Below are positions 38,151-59,138 of a stretch of DNA of 64,000 nucleotides, in pieces. The translations under genes and the position numbers were made by a program. The notes beneath the pieces were generated by a model. It worked only from the letters and a program-made list of their open reading frames with translations, had not been told where the DNA came from and made no database searches. The first letter of the stretch is position 1; every line of letters begins with the position of its first letter. The DNA comes from Scyliorhinus canicula. Its lineage: Eukaryota. The stretch spans positions 50,010,033-50,074,032 of the forward strand of contig NC_052151.1 in NCBI RefSeq assembly GCF_902713615.1, given 5' to 3'.

Positions 38151-40419
38151 TTGATCAGACTACTAATCTGAAGACATATGTAAATTGTCACCAAAACCTT
38201 CTCAAGGGAAAGTAGCGACAAATGCTGGCCTTGCCGGTAACTTTACATCTAATTCACAAATTTTTTAAAAGGAGTGCAACTTTGCTGAGGCCCATTGTAG
38301 AATTCTCTACTGCCACTACAGTAGAAGACATATCATCCACCATGTGACCACCAGAGATCAAAAGACAAGGCGTTCTTAGTCTGTAATGCTTGGTCTATTG
38401 TATTTATCTACTGAACCATTCCCAGTTCTACCAGAAAAGGCAACATTTTTAAATTGACTGCAAATGATGCAAAAGATTTTGCTAACCTGTAATTAATTTA
38501 CTTGTTTTCTAGGCTGCAGGAAACAAAACACAGCTTGTTAAATAAAAGCCGTTTTATAATCGATATCGTTGGGTAGCTGAACTGCTGCAAACAACAAAAA
38601 ATATTTTTTTTGAAATTGCAAATTAAGGCAGTTGGCTTCCTCGTGCTGTGCCATATACATTTTTGGGGATAACTAGGTGAAAATTATCACGATCCTTCAA
38701 CTGTCGAAAACCAATTTATTTTCAGGGCATTATCTTTTTACTCTGCTCAGAAATCAAGGCATGGGGTCAAGGCCCGTAGTCACAGAAATACTGCAGTTCA
38801 GAAGGAGGCCAGTTGGTAGAGAATAGAATATCATCAAGGAAGATTGTGTAGAACAGGGTGAAGTGTGGATTCTAAAAGCCTGAAGATTGAACGGGGAGGA
38901 AATGCATTTGTATCACACTGCGGTCTGTGAGAGCACACTGGGGAAAAATGGCTACTCCCATTGACGCTCCCCCCGCCCCAAAAAAAAACATTACAGCAGA
39001 ACTGTATTGCACTCAGGACATCTGAGGTAGTGAAAGGAGCTTTCTATATGTCAATCTTTCTTTTCTTCCTTGCAGAGGAAGTGTTGGGAGAAGGATGGGC
39101 AGGCCTCTGCAAAGACGAACGTAAACTGAGTTTCAAACAGAATGCATTAACTTAGTTAAGTTGTAGCAGCAATAGAAATTCCAAAGCACAAGGAGTCACA
39201 CTCAAACAGATTCATGGCCATCAATTGTTTCTCATGTTCTGCCGCACAGGAGGCCCTCTGGTGTCATTTACAATGCCTCACTAGTTGTCCATGAATTATG
39301 AACTATTAATGGTGTTAAGCAACTGCAACTTCAATTAGCAAGCTCTGAAAAGTAACAACATTCAGCTCCACTTAATGCAATCAATCAAACAGAACACTGG
39401 AGTCTTGGGAGACGGGTGGTGTGTTTTTCAGTTGCTGCATGCCAGATGAAAGAATAGCTCTGGTAAAGCCACTGTATTAGGTGACATGCTGATTCTACAA
39501 GCACACCGCAGAGACCAGGCATGTTCCCTTCAGTTTCACAACAGCTAATAGCTTGCAATACGAGATATGAGTCACATCAGAACTGCCAAGTTCTAAAACA
39601 TCCCCATGTTAAGGTGACCACGATAAACCAACACTACTCACTAACCAACCTTCTTTCGAGTGTTCTAATGCTCATTTTCTTGTTCACTTCTGGTTTGAAG
39701 CCACTTGTGTTAACAAGGAATTAAATTTAGTAATGAACAGAATAAATGAGCAAGTATGCAGTCCAATTGTTGCTTAGACAAGATCACAAAAACCAACCTG
39801 TTGTCACTTGGGAAGAATTACCTTTGATTCAGAGAAAGCCCAACAGATGTAAATTACCCTCGTGATGGCCTACAATGAATAATGAAATCCACAGGAGTTA
39901 ATCCAGATGGGATGATGAGGTAGCCAGGCAGAAGAATTCAAAGATTAAGAAAAGGACAATAAGATTGAAGAGGGTAATTTGAATAGCTACAAAAAATCTT
40001 GATTAAATACAATTCTTTAATGTCAGAAGTATCAAATCAAACCAATTACAAGCCGCAAATTATTAACTACCGAACTACTAACGGGCAACATTACTGCAGG
40101 AGAAAGCACTTCAATGTCATAACTCAGCGAAATAATTATTAGATATTTGTTGCAAAAAGGAGAGTTTTCACTCCATTAACTGTAACCTAGTGGTATACCA
40201 GCCTATCAGTTTTTGAAATCCAGGAATCAGTTGGTACAATTCTATCTTGGGGGTATGGGTTTGGACATAAAAACAACATGTATTTATACAGCATCTTTGA
40301 CACAGTAGAATACTCGATTCTCTTCTTTTGAATCCACTTGCATTGCAAGTTTAAAAGTCAGCATTTATTCCCCACTACGTTCAAATGGCCATTGTAGATC
40401 ATCACCCAGAATGAAGAAT

Positions 40420-40620
40420 AGTAAGAAGTCTTACAACACCAGGTTAAAGTCCAACAGGTTTGTTTCAAACACGAGCTTTCGGAGCACGGCTCCTTCTTCA
40501 GGTGAAGGAGCCGTGCTCCGAAAGCTCGTGTTTGAAACAAACCTGTTGGACTTTAACCTGGTGTTGTAAGACTTCTTACTGTGCTCACCCCAGTCCAACG
40601 CCGGCATCTCCACATCATGG
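40420..40620 (+). mobile_element. Fold-back Penelope-like mini-insertion, family 1 (perfect 77-bp palindrome)
   Basis: Arms 40420-40496 and 40504-40580 are exact reverse complements; 40-nt tail 40581-40620; TSD CAGAATGAAGAAT at 40407-40419 and 40621-40633; arm matches 51780-51850 downstream of the GIY-YIG ORF. Confidence 0.92.
40470..40506 (-). ncRNA. Minimal type I hammerhead ribozyme motif (intact core)
   Basis: UUCAC-CUGAAGA-A-GGAGC(CGU)GCUCC-GAAA-GC-U-C-GUG: CUGANGA and GAAA boxes, 5-bp stem II, self-complementary AGCU stem III, CAC:GUG stem I. Predicted cleavage between 40473 and 40472. Confidence 0.75.
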
Positions 40621-42114
40621 CAGAATGAAGAATGGCACTGATCATGGGATAGTCTAGACTTTCCCTTTCTGTCCTATTTCTGACATTAGCTAAGCACTGT
40701 TTCTTTGTTCTTTAAACAATTTCCCCAGAGGCCTGCCGGTAGGATTTTTTAGTCTCTTCATGTGCAAATATTATCATAGCAATAGTGTACAATCACAGAG
40801 CCACTCACTTTATCTTTTATTCATTCTGAGGATGCAGCCGTCCCTGACAAGGCAAGAATTTATTGCCTGTTCATTGAGAGTGTATGGTGAGCTCCCTTCT
40901 TGGACTGTTGCAGCCCACGAGGTGTAGATACACCCACAGTAATGATTAATGAGCCAAAGTTATCTTTTCACCCATAACTACCTCCTCACCAAAGAACATA
41001 TATATATTTTATCACTTTGTTTTTAAAAATTCTCCACACTGGTTCTACCCACCCTGTTCGGCTAAGTCTAACTTCAATATCGGTAATCTTTTCACTTCTT
41101 CCCCATATCACTTAAATAATGGAAATATTTTGGAGTTTGGAGAACAGCTCTTCCTCGAATACCACCATTTCTCAACGGGCAGCCAGGGCCTCGGTGCAGC
41201 ATATCACAGCTGTAAGATGACACTAACATAGAAACATCAAAAATAGTAGCAGGCATAGGCCATTCAGCCCTTCGACTCTTTCCAGATTCAAAGTCTGGGA
41301 GGGGTCCATCTTCCAACCTCTGAATATTTTTAAAATTAATTTACGGGATATAGGCGTTCTGGCTAGGCCAGAACTTTAATTCCCATCCCTAGTTGCCCTT
41401 CAGAAGGTGGTGGTGAGTTACCTCTTGAACCGCTGCAGTCTGTGATGTGTAGGTACACCCACAGTGCTGTTAGGGAGGGAGCTCCAGGATTTTGACCCAG
41501 CGACAGTGAAGGAACGGTGATATATTTCCAAGTTAGGTTGGTGAGTAACTTGGAGGGGAACTTCCTAGTGGTGGGGTTCCCATGTATCTGCTGTTCTTGT
41601 CCTTTTAGATGGTAGTGTTGGTGGGTTTGTAAAGTACTGCCGAAGGAACCTTGGTGAGTTCCTGCAGTGTATCATGTAGGCGGTGCACGTGGCTGCTACG
41701 GTTTGTCAGTAGTGGATGGATGGAATAGCTGATGAATGAGGGGAGACTGGTTGGGCGGTAATTGGCTTGTTTCATTCTGTTTCTTGTGTACAAGGCACAC
41801 CTCTGTAATTTTCCACATTTCTGGAAAGATGCCAGTGTTGTAGTTGTACTGGAACAGCTTGGCTAGGAGCGCACCCCATAGCCTTTGTAGTATCCACCGC
41901 CTTCAGCCATTTCTTGTTTTCATGTGGAGTGAATTGTATTGGCTGAAGACTGACATCTGTGATGCTAGAGACCTCTGGGGAAGGTCAGGATGGATCATCC
42001 ACCCGGCATTTTGCGAATGCTTCAGCCTTGTCTTTTGCACTATATGCTGGGCTCCTTCGTCACTGAGCCTTCTCCTCCAGTGAATTGTTTAATTGTCCAC
42101 CACCATTCACGGAC

Positions 42115-49998: not shown

Positions 49999-51208
49999 TT
50001 AATGTGCCTTTCAAGAAATAGAAGATAGCAACCCTTCCTCTGCTCAAAAAGCCAGGTTCCATTAAAATTATTATTTTCCCAGTGATGATCTATGGTTCAA
50101 CTAACACTGATTGAGACTGTATTACTCAAAGATTATCCACTTGCAGGAAATAATTAATTACCACAAAATAAAACTTCCTTTACAGAAGGGTGTCTTATGC
50201 CTCCCTTATCAAGTTCAATGCATTTTATCCAACTAGATCTATCACTTCCACTTGGTATATTCGCAACTCAGGGTGCACTTATCAAATTGTTTTGCCATTG
50301 CGATCAAACTGGCATTCAGGATAAACCAAGGTATGTTTATATTCTAAAACATTTATGCAATAACTCAGTAACCCAATTTTCTCCTTGCCGCTCATGCTGT
50401 TCATAACAATTTGTTTGAAGACAGGATTGTTGCGTTGTGTGTTTTAAATTCAATATGGAAAAGCAATATGTTTTGGAAAGGTGGAATTGACTTTCCTGAG
50501 AGGATTGAGGAAAAGCAGTATCTTTTCTTTATGAGATTTACATGATGAATGGCACTCCATTATTTTCTTCCCATTTACAAGAAATGCAAGAACTTGAGTG
50601 TAATCAGTATTTTAGATTTCTATTTTTCCATTTCTAGGTAGCCAAGTCGGAAAAGAGCTTGTTATATCTCTCAGATGAATATAACATAATGAATATTTCA
50701 CTTCCTTCTGCATCAACTCCTCGAACTCAAAATCTAACTGAACTTGAATCTTAAAGAAGCTATCATTTTTTTTTCCCAGTAGAACCATATCATCTGTAAC
50801 TCTGAGATATTGTTCATGCATGATTCCACACATCATTTTGAACTGCTAATGCATCTGAGTCAGATCGGATTGTGGTATCCATTTTAGGATCCTGTAGTTC
50901 CCGCAGTAATATTATCAAAAGTCCTCCTCCCTCTGATCTCATTGTTACTTCATGCTAATCACAACATCTACCTTCATGTATTAGCATTTCACTTGTTGGT
51001 GACATCTTATTTGTTACCATTTTACCACACTAAAATGCACCTCTCTCCACTCTTCTCCGTCTTTCGTGCCATTTTCTCTTTTTTTTACCTTTTTTTTAAC
51101 CTTGTTAAATTTTTCATTTATCCTGACTTTCTTAACTTTTCATTCACTGTTTCCCATTTTCTTCACTAAAGCTGGTGATTCATGATTAATCTCCACCTTC
51201 AAAATAGT

Positions 51209-51853
51209 TACACCATGACACGTGAGAACACCACCCACCAGGTACGCGGTACATACTCGTGCGACTCGGCCAAGTCGCTGCAGGAAAGGATGTCCCGAAG
51301 CGTGGTACATTGGCGAGACCATGCAGACGCTGCGACAACGAATGAACGGACATCGCGCGACAATCACCAGGCAGGAATGTTCCCTTCCAGTCGGGGAACA
51401 CTTCAGCAGTCGAGCGCATTCAGCCTCTGATCTCCGGGTAAGCGTTCTCCAAGGCGGCCTTCAGGTCGCGCGACAACGCAGAATCGCCGAGCAGAAACTT
51501 AAAGCCAAGTTCCGCACACATGAGTACGGCCTCAACCGGGACCTGGGATTCATGTCGCATTACATTCACCCCCCACGATCTGGCCTGGGCTTGCAAAATC
51601 CTACCAACTATCCTGGCTAGAGACAACTCACACCTCTTTAACCTGGGGTACCCCTCTCTCTGGATGTGTAAAGATTCAATTACCTGCAAATGCTCACATT
51701 CTAAGCATTGTCTGGCATCTTTGAATTTGTGTATATATATATATGTTTCTGGAACATACCTCTTCATTCACCTGAGGATGGAGCAGTGCTCTGAAAACTA
51801 GTGTTTGAAACAAACATGTTGGACTTTAACCTGGTGTAAGACTTCTTACTGTG
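51209..51853 (+). mobile_element. Penelope-like retroelement 3' fragment: GIY-YIG endonuclease C-terminus plus pseudo-LTR
   Basis: TRENTTHQVRGTYSCDS/RCRKGCPEAWYIGETMQTLRQRMNGHR...GEHF...EQKL..KF....GLN: YIG motif plus conserved R, H, E and N; the first motif is lost in a frameshifting deletion. Followed by a 3' UTR and a hammerhead-bearing repeat. Confidence 0.9.
51767..51803 (+). ncRNA. Minimal type I hammerhead ribozyme motif (slightly degenerate)
   Basis: UUCAC-CUGAGGA-U-GGAGC(AGU)GCUCU-GAAA-AC-U-A-GUG; the stem III palindrome is broken (AACU). Confidence 0.6.
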
Positions 51854-51919
51854 TTCAAAAAAGTAGTTGCACTACAGAATCACTAATTTGCTGGTTGGTA
51901 TGTAAGAGACAGAAGTTAC

Positions 51920-57917: not shown

Positions 57918-58244
57918 GGGCAGAATGGTAGCACAAGTGTATCACACTGTGGCTTCACAGCGCCAGGCTCCCAGGTTCGATTCCTCTCTGGGTCACTGTC
58001 TGTGCAGAGTCTGCACGTTCTCCCCGTGTCCGCATGGGTTTCCTCTGGGTGCTCCGGTTTCGTCCCACAGTCCAAAGACATGCAGGTTAGGTGGATTGGC
58101 TATGATAAATTGCCCTTAGTGACCAAAAAGGTTAGGACGGGTCACTGGGTTACGGGGATAGGGTGGAAGTCAGGGCTTAAGTCGGTCAGTGCAGACTCGA
58201 TGGGCTGAATGGCCTCCTTCTGCACTGTATGCTCTATGTTCTAT
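57918..58244 (+). mobile_element. HE1-type V-SINE
   Basis: Complete copy with CR1-type tail. Confidence 0.9.
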
Positions 58245-58534
58245 TGTCACAAGTAGGCTTATGAACACTGCAATAAAGTTACTGTGAAAAGCCCCTAATT
58301 ACCACACTCCGGCAGCTGTTCAGGTATACAGAGGGGGAATTCAGAATTTCCAATTCACCTAACAGCAAGTCTTTCAGGAATTGTGGGAGGAAACCGGAGC
58401 ACCTGGAGGAAACCAACGCAGACAAAGGGAGAACGTGCAGACTCCGCACAGACAGTGATCCAAGCCAGGAATCGAATCTGGTACCCTGACACTGTTAAGT
58501 ATCAGTGCTAACCACTGTGCTACCATGCTGTCCC
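58243..58534 (-). mobile_element. V-SINE with non-CR1 tail
   Basis: Same structure as 1445-2446; tail read on + as ATTGTCACAAGTAGGC...GTTACTGTGAAAAGCCCCTA. Confidence 0.85.
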
Positions 58535-58797
58535 TATTATTGAGAATATTACTGAAATGATTAGCTTTTCCTACAGGAGCACATGCAAGTGACAGCTGAT
58601 CATGGTGACCTTTGTGCAAATAGGTTCTTGTCATCTAACATCTAAAGTGAGGAGCTCAACAATTCTTTAATTTTCACAATGAAATAGTTCTTAACGAGCA
58701 TGTAAAAATGTCTTGTCTTCCTTTGTGCGTGACGGAAATATTGGTGAAGGAACCTGTCAAACTTTGATCATTGAACAGACTCATTGGTAGGATTTTA

Positions 58798-59138
58798 GGG
58801 ATGGCATGGTGGCACAATGGTTAGCACTGCTGCCTCACAGATCCAGGGACCCGGGTTTGAATCCGACCTTGGGTGACTGTGTGGAGTTTGCACTTTCTCC
58901 CCGTGTCTGTGTGGGTTTCCTCTGGATACTCCGGTTTCCTCCCACAGTCCAAATATGTGCAGGTAAGGTGGATTGGCCTTCATAGAAATTTCTCCCTAGT
59001 GTCCAAACAAAAATGTCAGATGGGGCTACTGGGTCAAGGAGATAAAGTGGAGGTGTCGGCTTAAGTAGGGTGCTCTTTCCAAGGGCCCGTGCAGACTCAA
59101 TGAGCCAAATGGCCTCCTTCTGCACTGTAATTTCTATG
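58798..59138 (+). mobile_element. HE1-type V-SINE
   Basis: Complete copy. Confidence 0.9.

Follow-up and report, generated by a model that had tools for sequence, protein, structure and literature searches.

Anatomy of the fold-back insertions

The stretch analysed here, called the window below, comprises 64,000 nucleotides (nt) of the shark Scyliorhinus canicula (NCBI RefSeq assembly GCF_902713615.1, contig NC_052151.1, positions 50,010,033 to 50,074,032 of the forward strand, read 5' to 3'); all coordinates are window positions. It contains two fold-back insertions, copy 1 at 40420-40620 (+) and copy 2 at 35892-36097 (-), and a simple 5'-truncated Penelope-like element (PLE) at 51210..51853 (+), which served as the reference copy. 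Judged by its sequence, the fold-back arm is the 3' terminal module of this GIY-YIG PLE. Direct reading of the 64-kb sequence established that both insertions share one design, in which an inverted arm is joined head to head to a direct arm that carries a tail at its outer end, and that neither holds anything beyond two copies of the terminal module of about 80-125 nt.

Copy 1 is framed by a target-site duplication (TSD) of 13 bp, CAGAATGAAGAAT, found at 40407..40419 and repeated perfectly at 40621..40633 (13/13). Its inverted, tail-less arm (40420..40503; minus strand in element sense) starts with AGTAAGAAG and includes the 7-nt centre TTCAGGT at 40497-40503. The direct arm (40504..40580, +), identical to it at 77/77 positions, starts inside the CUGANGA box of a hammerhead-like motif (+5..+8 in the numbering given below) and ends with ...CTTCTTACT. 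An AC-rich tail of 40 nt, GTGCTCACCCCAGTCC...CATCATGG, follows at 40581..40620 (+) on this arm only. In copy 2, which lies on the opposite strand, the 12-bp TSD ATAATGAAGGAG at 35880..35891 recurs identically at 36098..36109 (12/12) and encloses the 40-nt tail (35892..35931, -), the direct arm (35932..36015, -) with the centre GG at 36014-36015, and the inverted tail-less arm (36016..36097, +). The tail of copy 1 is found again in copy 2 at 90% identity; it also occurs in the ENA contigs L001 and L016 and is the commonest continuation of the arm in RNA reads. In both copies, one and the same base terminates the tail-less arm (AGTAAGAAG... / ...CTTCTTACT), and at the junctions the arms overlap by 3 nt, GAA/TTC in copy 1 and TGA/TCA in copy 2.

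These two copies are the longest close-spaced inverted repeats of the window (82 nt each, with identities of 98% and 93%). With blastn and an nhmmer profile, exactly five arms were found in the window, the fifth at 51777-51857 in the reference copy. The arms of copy 2 match each other at 72/78 positions; copy 2 is thus older than copy 1 with its 77/77 identity. Against copy 1, both arms of copy 2 share four states, i.e., H17 = A, a 1-nt insertion, TTC instead of TTT and GTGCTG instead of GTGTTG. A first-pass annotation of this DNA had described two insertions of arm, arm and tail with TSDs of 13 and 12 bp, a common base at the end of the tail-less arms, junction overlaps GAA and TGA, a fold-back point at the 5' edge of a hammerhead core and an origin of the arms from the terminal repeat of a GIY-YIG PLE; our reading of the sequence agrees with this description almost base for base.

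Two further observations concern inverted repeats in general. Other long inverted repeats at 57989-58883 are three copies of a tRNA-type short interspersed element in alternating orientation and are unrelated to the fold-back insertions. A miniature inverted-repeat or fold-back DNA transposon was considered as the identity of the two copies and is ruled out by the 40-nt tail at one end, by TSDs of 12 and 13 bp and by arms that derive from the 3' end of a retroelement.

Position of the fold-back point

We counted positions from C3 of the CUGA box (position 0; 51772 in the reference copy). In copy 1, the inverted arm reaches -2 (-5 with the shared GAA/TTC) and the direct arm +8 (+5 with the shared bases). 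In copy 2, the direct arm reaches -1 (-4 with the shared TCA/TGA) and the inverted arm +4 (+1 with the shared bases). The fold-back point is hence located at -5..+8 around C3, the 5' edge of the hammerhead-like core. In copy 1 the inverted arm extends furthest in the 5' direction; in copy 2 the direct arm does. Since the predicted ribozyme cut lies between +28 and +29, the junctions are 20-35 nt upstream of it and do not represent a ribozyme-made RNA end; the template RNAs were uncleaved at the motif.

On the plus strand of the window, the centre of both copies reads TCAGGTGA, the antisense of the quasi-palindrome TCA-CC-TGA of the element (-4..+3). This quasi-palindrome, TCACCTGA, is intrinsic to the element. 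It allows two complementary DNAs (cDNAs) that both terminate at -4 or -5 to pair head to head over 6-8 bp, with a central GG/GG mismatch, and such a symmetric annealing model reproduces the junction of copy 2 exactly.

The reference copy and its family

Within the window, the reference copy is the only member of the family that retains coding sequence, and it is 5'-truncated inside the endonuclease. Its open reading frame (ORF) at 51222-51620 (+) contains ...WYIGETMQTLRQRMNGHR... and represents the YIGET...R...H part of a PLE-type GIY-YIG endonuclease. The Pfam GIY-YIG model scored this ORF below cutoff (E = 0.054) because the copy has lost about 18 nt of the GIY part at 51274-51276. In the family consensus, built from reads of the family (...AACGTTGTCTACCTCATAC...), the missing nucleotides encode ...NVVYLIRC..., with VVYLIRC as the GIY equivalent. 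Protein searches returned homologues of 81-86% identity, uncharacterised proteins of Mustelus asterias and Chiloscyllium punctatum, as well as further fragments in marine metagenomes, and one homologue has a precomputed PF01541 (GIY-YIG) match. The ORF is followed by the 3' untranslated region (UTR). Further features of the reference copy are a TATA-like run (51733-51746), the 5' strand of helix I (51762-51771), the CUGAGGA box (51772-51778), stem II (51780-51792), GAAA (51793-51796) and the predicted hammerhead cut (between 51800 and 51801), and the arm ends without a tail at 51850/51853. The TSD of this insertion is imperfect (TTCAAAATAGTT at 51198-51209, TTCAAAAAAGTAGTT at 51854-51868).

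DNA contigs of two species and RNA reads were aligned on 51100-51900 of the reference copy; all DNA runs consisted of contigs, and the only raw-read library was of polyA-selected RNA. The alignments indicate a very high-copy family that is present in both species. The family consensus of the terminal module is closer to copies 1 and 2 than to the diverged reference copy, from which it differs by 51779 T>A, 51792 T>C, 51797 A>G, 51816 A>C and a TGT inserted after 51834. Strand-changing joints were sought at the hammerhead edge; among the joints listed for the aligned region, they lay in the ORF region only. Exact-pattern scans of metagenome contigs with the arm and with the tail gave no match; of two pattern scans of viral contigs, one was without match and the other gave 11 matches to a short 16-mer, which we take as chance.

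The ENA metagenome contigs L001 and L014-L017 represent related but different PLE families and were used for covariation and for the TATA-like motif only. Contig L014 (1-972) has identical ends of 55 nt, implying a tandem or circular unit of about 917 nt; this unit holds a hammerhead arm, a 17-nt tail-to-tail palindrome around AATAAAATAGTA, a truncated endonuclease ORF and a second partial arm. In the RNA run X22, two classes of loose read ends were seen on the reference copy. At 51768, 57 reads join ...GGGAATCTGAA to the arm at -4, and at 51850, 80 reads continue with AGACTCCTGCAAACAGC... straight after the tail-less end. Each class has its own consensus continuation, neither of which occurs in the window, and both may stem from one expressed solo arm bounded at 51768 and 51850.

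The hammerhead-like motif

The arm fits the published descriptor of minimal hammerhead ribozymes (Cervera & De la Pena 2014, PMC4209133), on which the hammerhead assignment rests. It has CUGANGA, the G10.1-C11.1 pair, GAAA, a palindromic 15.2-16.2 (AGCU), H17 as C or A, and a helix I in which CAUUCAC pairs with GUGUUUG. In the inverted arm of copy 1, the core reads CUGAAGA-A-GGAGC-CGU-GCUCC-GAA-AGCU-C/GUG (40477-40501, -), and the same parse holds for the reference copy, L001 and L014. In a small sample of three families, stem II shows compensatory changes (GGAGC/GCUCC in the window family, GGUGC/GCAUC in L001, GAAGC/GCUUC in L014), and helix I likewise varies in a compensatory manner between families (CAC/GUG versus UUUGC/GCGGA).

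Only part of the earlier claim of hammerhead cores in the fold-back insertions holds up. The descriptor is matched, yet the core is complete in just one of the four fold-back arms, the inverted arm of copy 1. In copy 1, the direct arm, with a predicted cut between 40527 and 40528 (+), lacks CUGAA; in copy 2, the core of the direct arm is decayed, with A9>G, and the inverted arm is without C3. Furthermore, the Rfam covariance models Hammerhead_1, _3, _II, HH9 and HH10 gave no match at gathering score across the window, nor any match at E <= 10 on 40380-40660 or 51500-51900. This is expected, since the motif has no intramolecular helix III. Published minimal PLE hammerheads likewise have no such helix and are thought to act as dimers (PMC4209133).

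RNA reads showed no enriched ends at the predicted cut 51800/51801, which for a polyA-selected library is weak evidence. As RNA, the fold-back unit is predicted to form a near-perfect 77-bp hairpin (-160 kcal/mol, z = -24.8), which would prevent the ribozyme fold.

Upstream motif and sequence depth

A TATA-like motif (TATATG or TATG) is found 28-40 nt upstream of C3 in four PLE families, the window copy and three relatives including L001, L014 and L016, the 3' UTRs of which have otherwise diverged. In both species, the family consensus includes the TA run (loose ends at 51736). Moreover, TCATTC at -8..-3 resembles an initiator, and an arrangement of TATA, 20 bp and initiator has been described in the pseudo-long terminal repeat (pLTR) of a rotifer PLE (PMC3846280). 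The conservation of the motif suggests a pLTR promoter that fires at the 5' edge of the hammerhead.

On the reference copy, depth is approximately flat over about 540 nt of the body and then rises 4-6 fold within one 27-nt bin at the hammerhead 5' edge; the rise is seen with the DNA contigs of both species as well as with the RNA reads. In run X3 (DNA contigs, word depth), the bins 51721-51747, 51748-51774, 51775-51801 and 51802-51828 have depths of 95k, 385k, 481k and 1127k, and in X22 (RNA reads) the corresponding depths are 76, 198, 438 and 708. The rise at the hammerhead edge matches what a discrete class of mini-copies predicts. A second step of 1.5-2.3 fold, again in DNA contigs and RNA reads, is seen at 51802, adjoining the predicted cut; it could reflect many copies starting at the cut site or merely better conservation downstream.

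Likeness of the target sites to the element

When reverse-complemented, both TSDs (ATTCTTCATTCTG and CTCCTTCATTAT) match the 5' strand of helix I, directly 5' of the fold-back point. The matches are TCTTCATTC (9 nt) at -11..-3 and CTTCATT (7 nt) at -10..-4, in the window zone 51761-51769. When random 13-mers of the window were compared with the same 31-nt zone, matches of 9 nt or more had P = 0.0018 and those of 7 nt or more P = 0.022; the likeness was noticed post hoc and comprises two cases. The two TSDs are identical to each other at 9/12 positions. In the matching register, the nicks fall at the same relative places in both targets. Of the two cDNAs of each copy, it is the one primed from the RNA-complementary overhang that extends up to the putative duplex edge. 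A third likeness, at the insertion at 51210, was dropped when an apparent 8/13 fell to 5/13 in the correct register.

Discussion

We consider it likely, with a probability of roughly two in three, that each hairpin is an independent minimal PLE insertion, for which the two nicked strands of the target each served as a primer of reverse transcription, with one start at the tail end and a second 40 nt further upstream, and in which the two cDNAs were joined head to head over TCA-CC-TGA. The GIY-YIG endonuclease of the element nicked the target with a stagger of 12-13 bp, as the TSDs of 12 and 13 bp show. Both target 3' ends would then prime reverse transcription inside the element RNA, one cDNA beginning at a distal start site, the tail end, and the other at a proximal site 40 nt upstream, the tail-less end (...CUUCUUACU). 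Both cDNAs would extend only to the 5' edge of the hammerhead module (-5..+8 around C3), where their 3' ends could anneal over the quasi-palindrome UCA-CC-UGA with 3-nt overlaps, followed by fill-in. The stop point would be a run-off at the 5' end of transcripts starting about 30 nt downstream of the TATA-like motif, which we regard as the most likely reason for it. If transcripts begin at about -6..-1, reverse transcription from the start sites nearest to the RNA 5' end would yield cDNAs of only 80-125 nt, and the recurrent small size of the insertions would thus be accounted for.

The two start sites we infer from the anatomy of the insertions together with the in vitro behaviour of PAc, a Poseidon PLE of Anolis carolinensis. 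Frangieh et al. (2024) showed that the purified PLE cleaves and extends both target strands (PMC11167929). Reverse transcription by PAc starts at two adjacent internal RNA sites that are non-homologous to the target, and the tail is the sequence between them (PMC11167929). In PAc, the hammerhead cut falls 26 nt into the ORF and the distal start 111-118 nt into it, 85-92 nt past the cut (PMC11167929). In the shark insertions, the corresponding distances downstream from the predicted cut are 93 nt for the tail end and 53 nt for the tail-less end. Two adjacent start sites, with both target strands cut and extended as in vitro (PMC11167929), would explain why one arm carries a tail and the other does not. 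Insertions of PLEs in general often have an inverted 5' copy beside a direct copy, a tail of 30-40 bp at one end only, and a TSD (PMC8557442; PMC3846280).

We favour independent formation of the two copies. The arm that reaches furthest is inverted in copy 1 and direct in copy 2; neither copy can therefore derive from the other, and the two were assembled separately and not from a common master, which supports what the first-pass annotation had preferred. The hairpins are hence probably dead-end products, unlikely to propagate as a family.

Several points weigh against this interpretation. Only two fold-back copies were inspected, and the start sites of reverse transcription in the shark family are placed by analogy with the lizard element. 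The polyA RNA-seq run shows no position at which many molecules begin, and no transcript start was seen in it; its reads are about equal on both strands and are dominated by passive read-through. The depth step at the hammerhead edge coincides with the start of conservation between families (L001 versus the window), so that it is consistent with a hot spot but is no proof of one. Symmetric annealing accounts for copy 1 only with a slip of 3 nt in GAAGAAGG; otherwise, an ordinary asymmetric join by 3-nt microhomology is required. Finally, a transcript start near -6 does not explain the TSD matches to -11..-3 in both copies.

The location of the junction beside a motif with conserved structure, and compensatory changes in both of its stems, might instead suggest that the ribozyme itself determines the fold-back. 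Copying of stem II or the RNA fold would then dislodge the reverse transcriptase and cause a switch to the other cDNA, and indeed, in each copy the shorter of the two arms stops 0-7 nt past the 5' base of stem II. The longer arms, however, extend 10-13 nt past stem II, and at the junction the whole ribozyme has already been copied, leaving no structure ahead of the enzyme. Moreover, the junction is 20-35 nt away from the cut site, and hammerhead mutants left the insertion products of PAc unchanged in vitro (PMC11167929). We therefore hold a structure-driven template switch to be unlikely. The ribozyme-centred causation proposed by the first-pass annotation was favoured by none of our tests, and a transcript 5' end about 30 nt past the TATA-like motif, or annealing over TCACCTGA, fits the junctions as well or better. 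About as unlikely, in our estimate, is a stop guided by the target, in which the 12-13-nt overhang pairs with the helix-I 5' strand of the RNA (-11..-3), or the other overhang with its cDNA, and the duplex sets the cDNA end. Targets that resemble each other would then lead to the same junction. The TSD matches and the extension of the respective cDNA to the putative duplex edge in both copies speak for such a stop, and microhomology-annealed 5' junctions have been described for a rotifer PLE (PMC3846280). Nevertheless, it draws on two cases noticed after the fact, and the target of the simple insertion (51210-51853) is AT-rich and unrelated. The likeness could equally arise if the endonuclease favours targets that resemble the pLTR boundary of its own element; PAc, for its part, cleaves its own ORF-pLTR junction at an ATT (PMC11167929). 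Going further, the helix-I 5' strand (CUUCAUUCAC) might act as a guide that pairs with a single-stranded target overhang (GAATGAAG-like sites), like a trans-acting hammerhead on its substrate, and that selects or holds the target and blocks reverse transcription at the duplex edge. We regard such a guide as rather improbable; if it existed, it would fix the fold-back point, and the conserved PLE ribozyme would gain a role in integration instead of RNA processing.

Least probable, in our view, is that the hairpins are a self-propagating non-autonomous family or arose by snap-back self-priming of a single cDNA. Self-priming has a precedent, as palindromes at inverted pLTR junctions were interpreted in this way by Arkhipova et al. 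2013 (PMC3846280). After snap-back, however, the inverted arm would contain a copy of the tail or would end at varying positions, whereas both inverted arms end exactly at the tail-less base. As for the propagating family that had also been put forward, the two centres are structurally different and not interconvertible by point mutation, and in an RNA locked in the -160 kcal/mol hairpin the ribozyme would be unable to fold and the internal start sites would not be recognised.

Integration of PLEs is the least understood retrotransposition pathway, with a first in vitro system available from 2024. If formed by priming on both strands, the fold-back insertions would be clean in vivo products with both predicted signatures, i.e., two-strand priming and start sites 40 nt apart, and the dual-strand, dual-start-site mechanism would thereby be shown for a cartilaginous fish. 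They also offer a simple genomic assay, since thousands of short copies could be scored for junction position, tail presence and TSD sequence. Such an assay could settle what stops the cDNA, whether an endonuclease preference is tied to the element's own pLTR boundary, and whether the ribozyme takes part in integration at all. For the host, a copy in a transcribed region would encode a near-perfect 77-bp RNA hairpin and thus a potential source of small RNAs.

The hairpins are the smallest form of an already described type of PLE insertion and not a new kind of element. With the canonical PLE insertion (Evgen'ev & Arkhipova 2005; PMC3846280; PMC8557442) they share the head-to-head inverted copy, the tail at one end and the short TSD that encloses the unit; in both, the repeat contains a hammerhead, and the arms meet at an inverted junction with a short overlap or palindrome. 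In contrast to it, they have neither ORF nor internal sequence and consist of only two terminal modules (about 200 bp). Their TSDs of 12-13 bp are somewhat longer than those of the rotifer examples (8-10 bp). PAc and the shark insertions appear alike in the use of both strands as primers, in two adjacent starts of reverse transcription, in a distal start about 90 nt past the cut and in an AC-rich start region. Compared with the PAc biochemistry, the shark case consists of genomic fossils whose start sites are deduced from insertion ends, and the ORF of the shark family consensus does not start in stem II.

Priming from two strands has a counterpart in the twin priming of L1. According to the model associated with Ostertag and Kazazian (2001), both target strands reportedly prime cDNA on the element RNA, and a microhomology join leads to an inverted, 5'-truncated insertion within one TSD. 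The second priming site of L1 is arbitrary and homology-dependent, whereas in the shark element it would be a fixed internal start, which would account for the invariant tail-less end.

In Schistosoma mansoni, dual minimal hammerheads on opposite strands, 100-700 bp apart, were read as truncated PLEs (PMC4209133). They resemble the shark copies in having two close, opposite motifs of PLE type; no anatomy was given for those pairs, whereas TSD, tail and junction are resolved here, with one of four motifs intact. Animal non-LTR retrozymes (PMC7229834; Li et al. 2026, preprint 10.64898/2026.07.22.740005) are similarly small, non-coding and PLE-derived, with type-I hammerheads. Retrozymes, however, are direct tandem repeats that give rise to circular RNAs, whereas each shark unit stands alone between TSDs, has its arms in inverted orientation and is predicted to adopt a plain hairpin fold. 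The inverted, non-tandem arms, the single intact core and the predicted 77-bp RNA hairpin rule out that the fold-back insertions are retrozymes of this kind.

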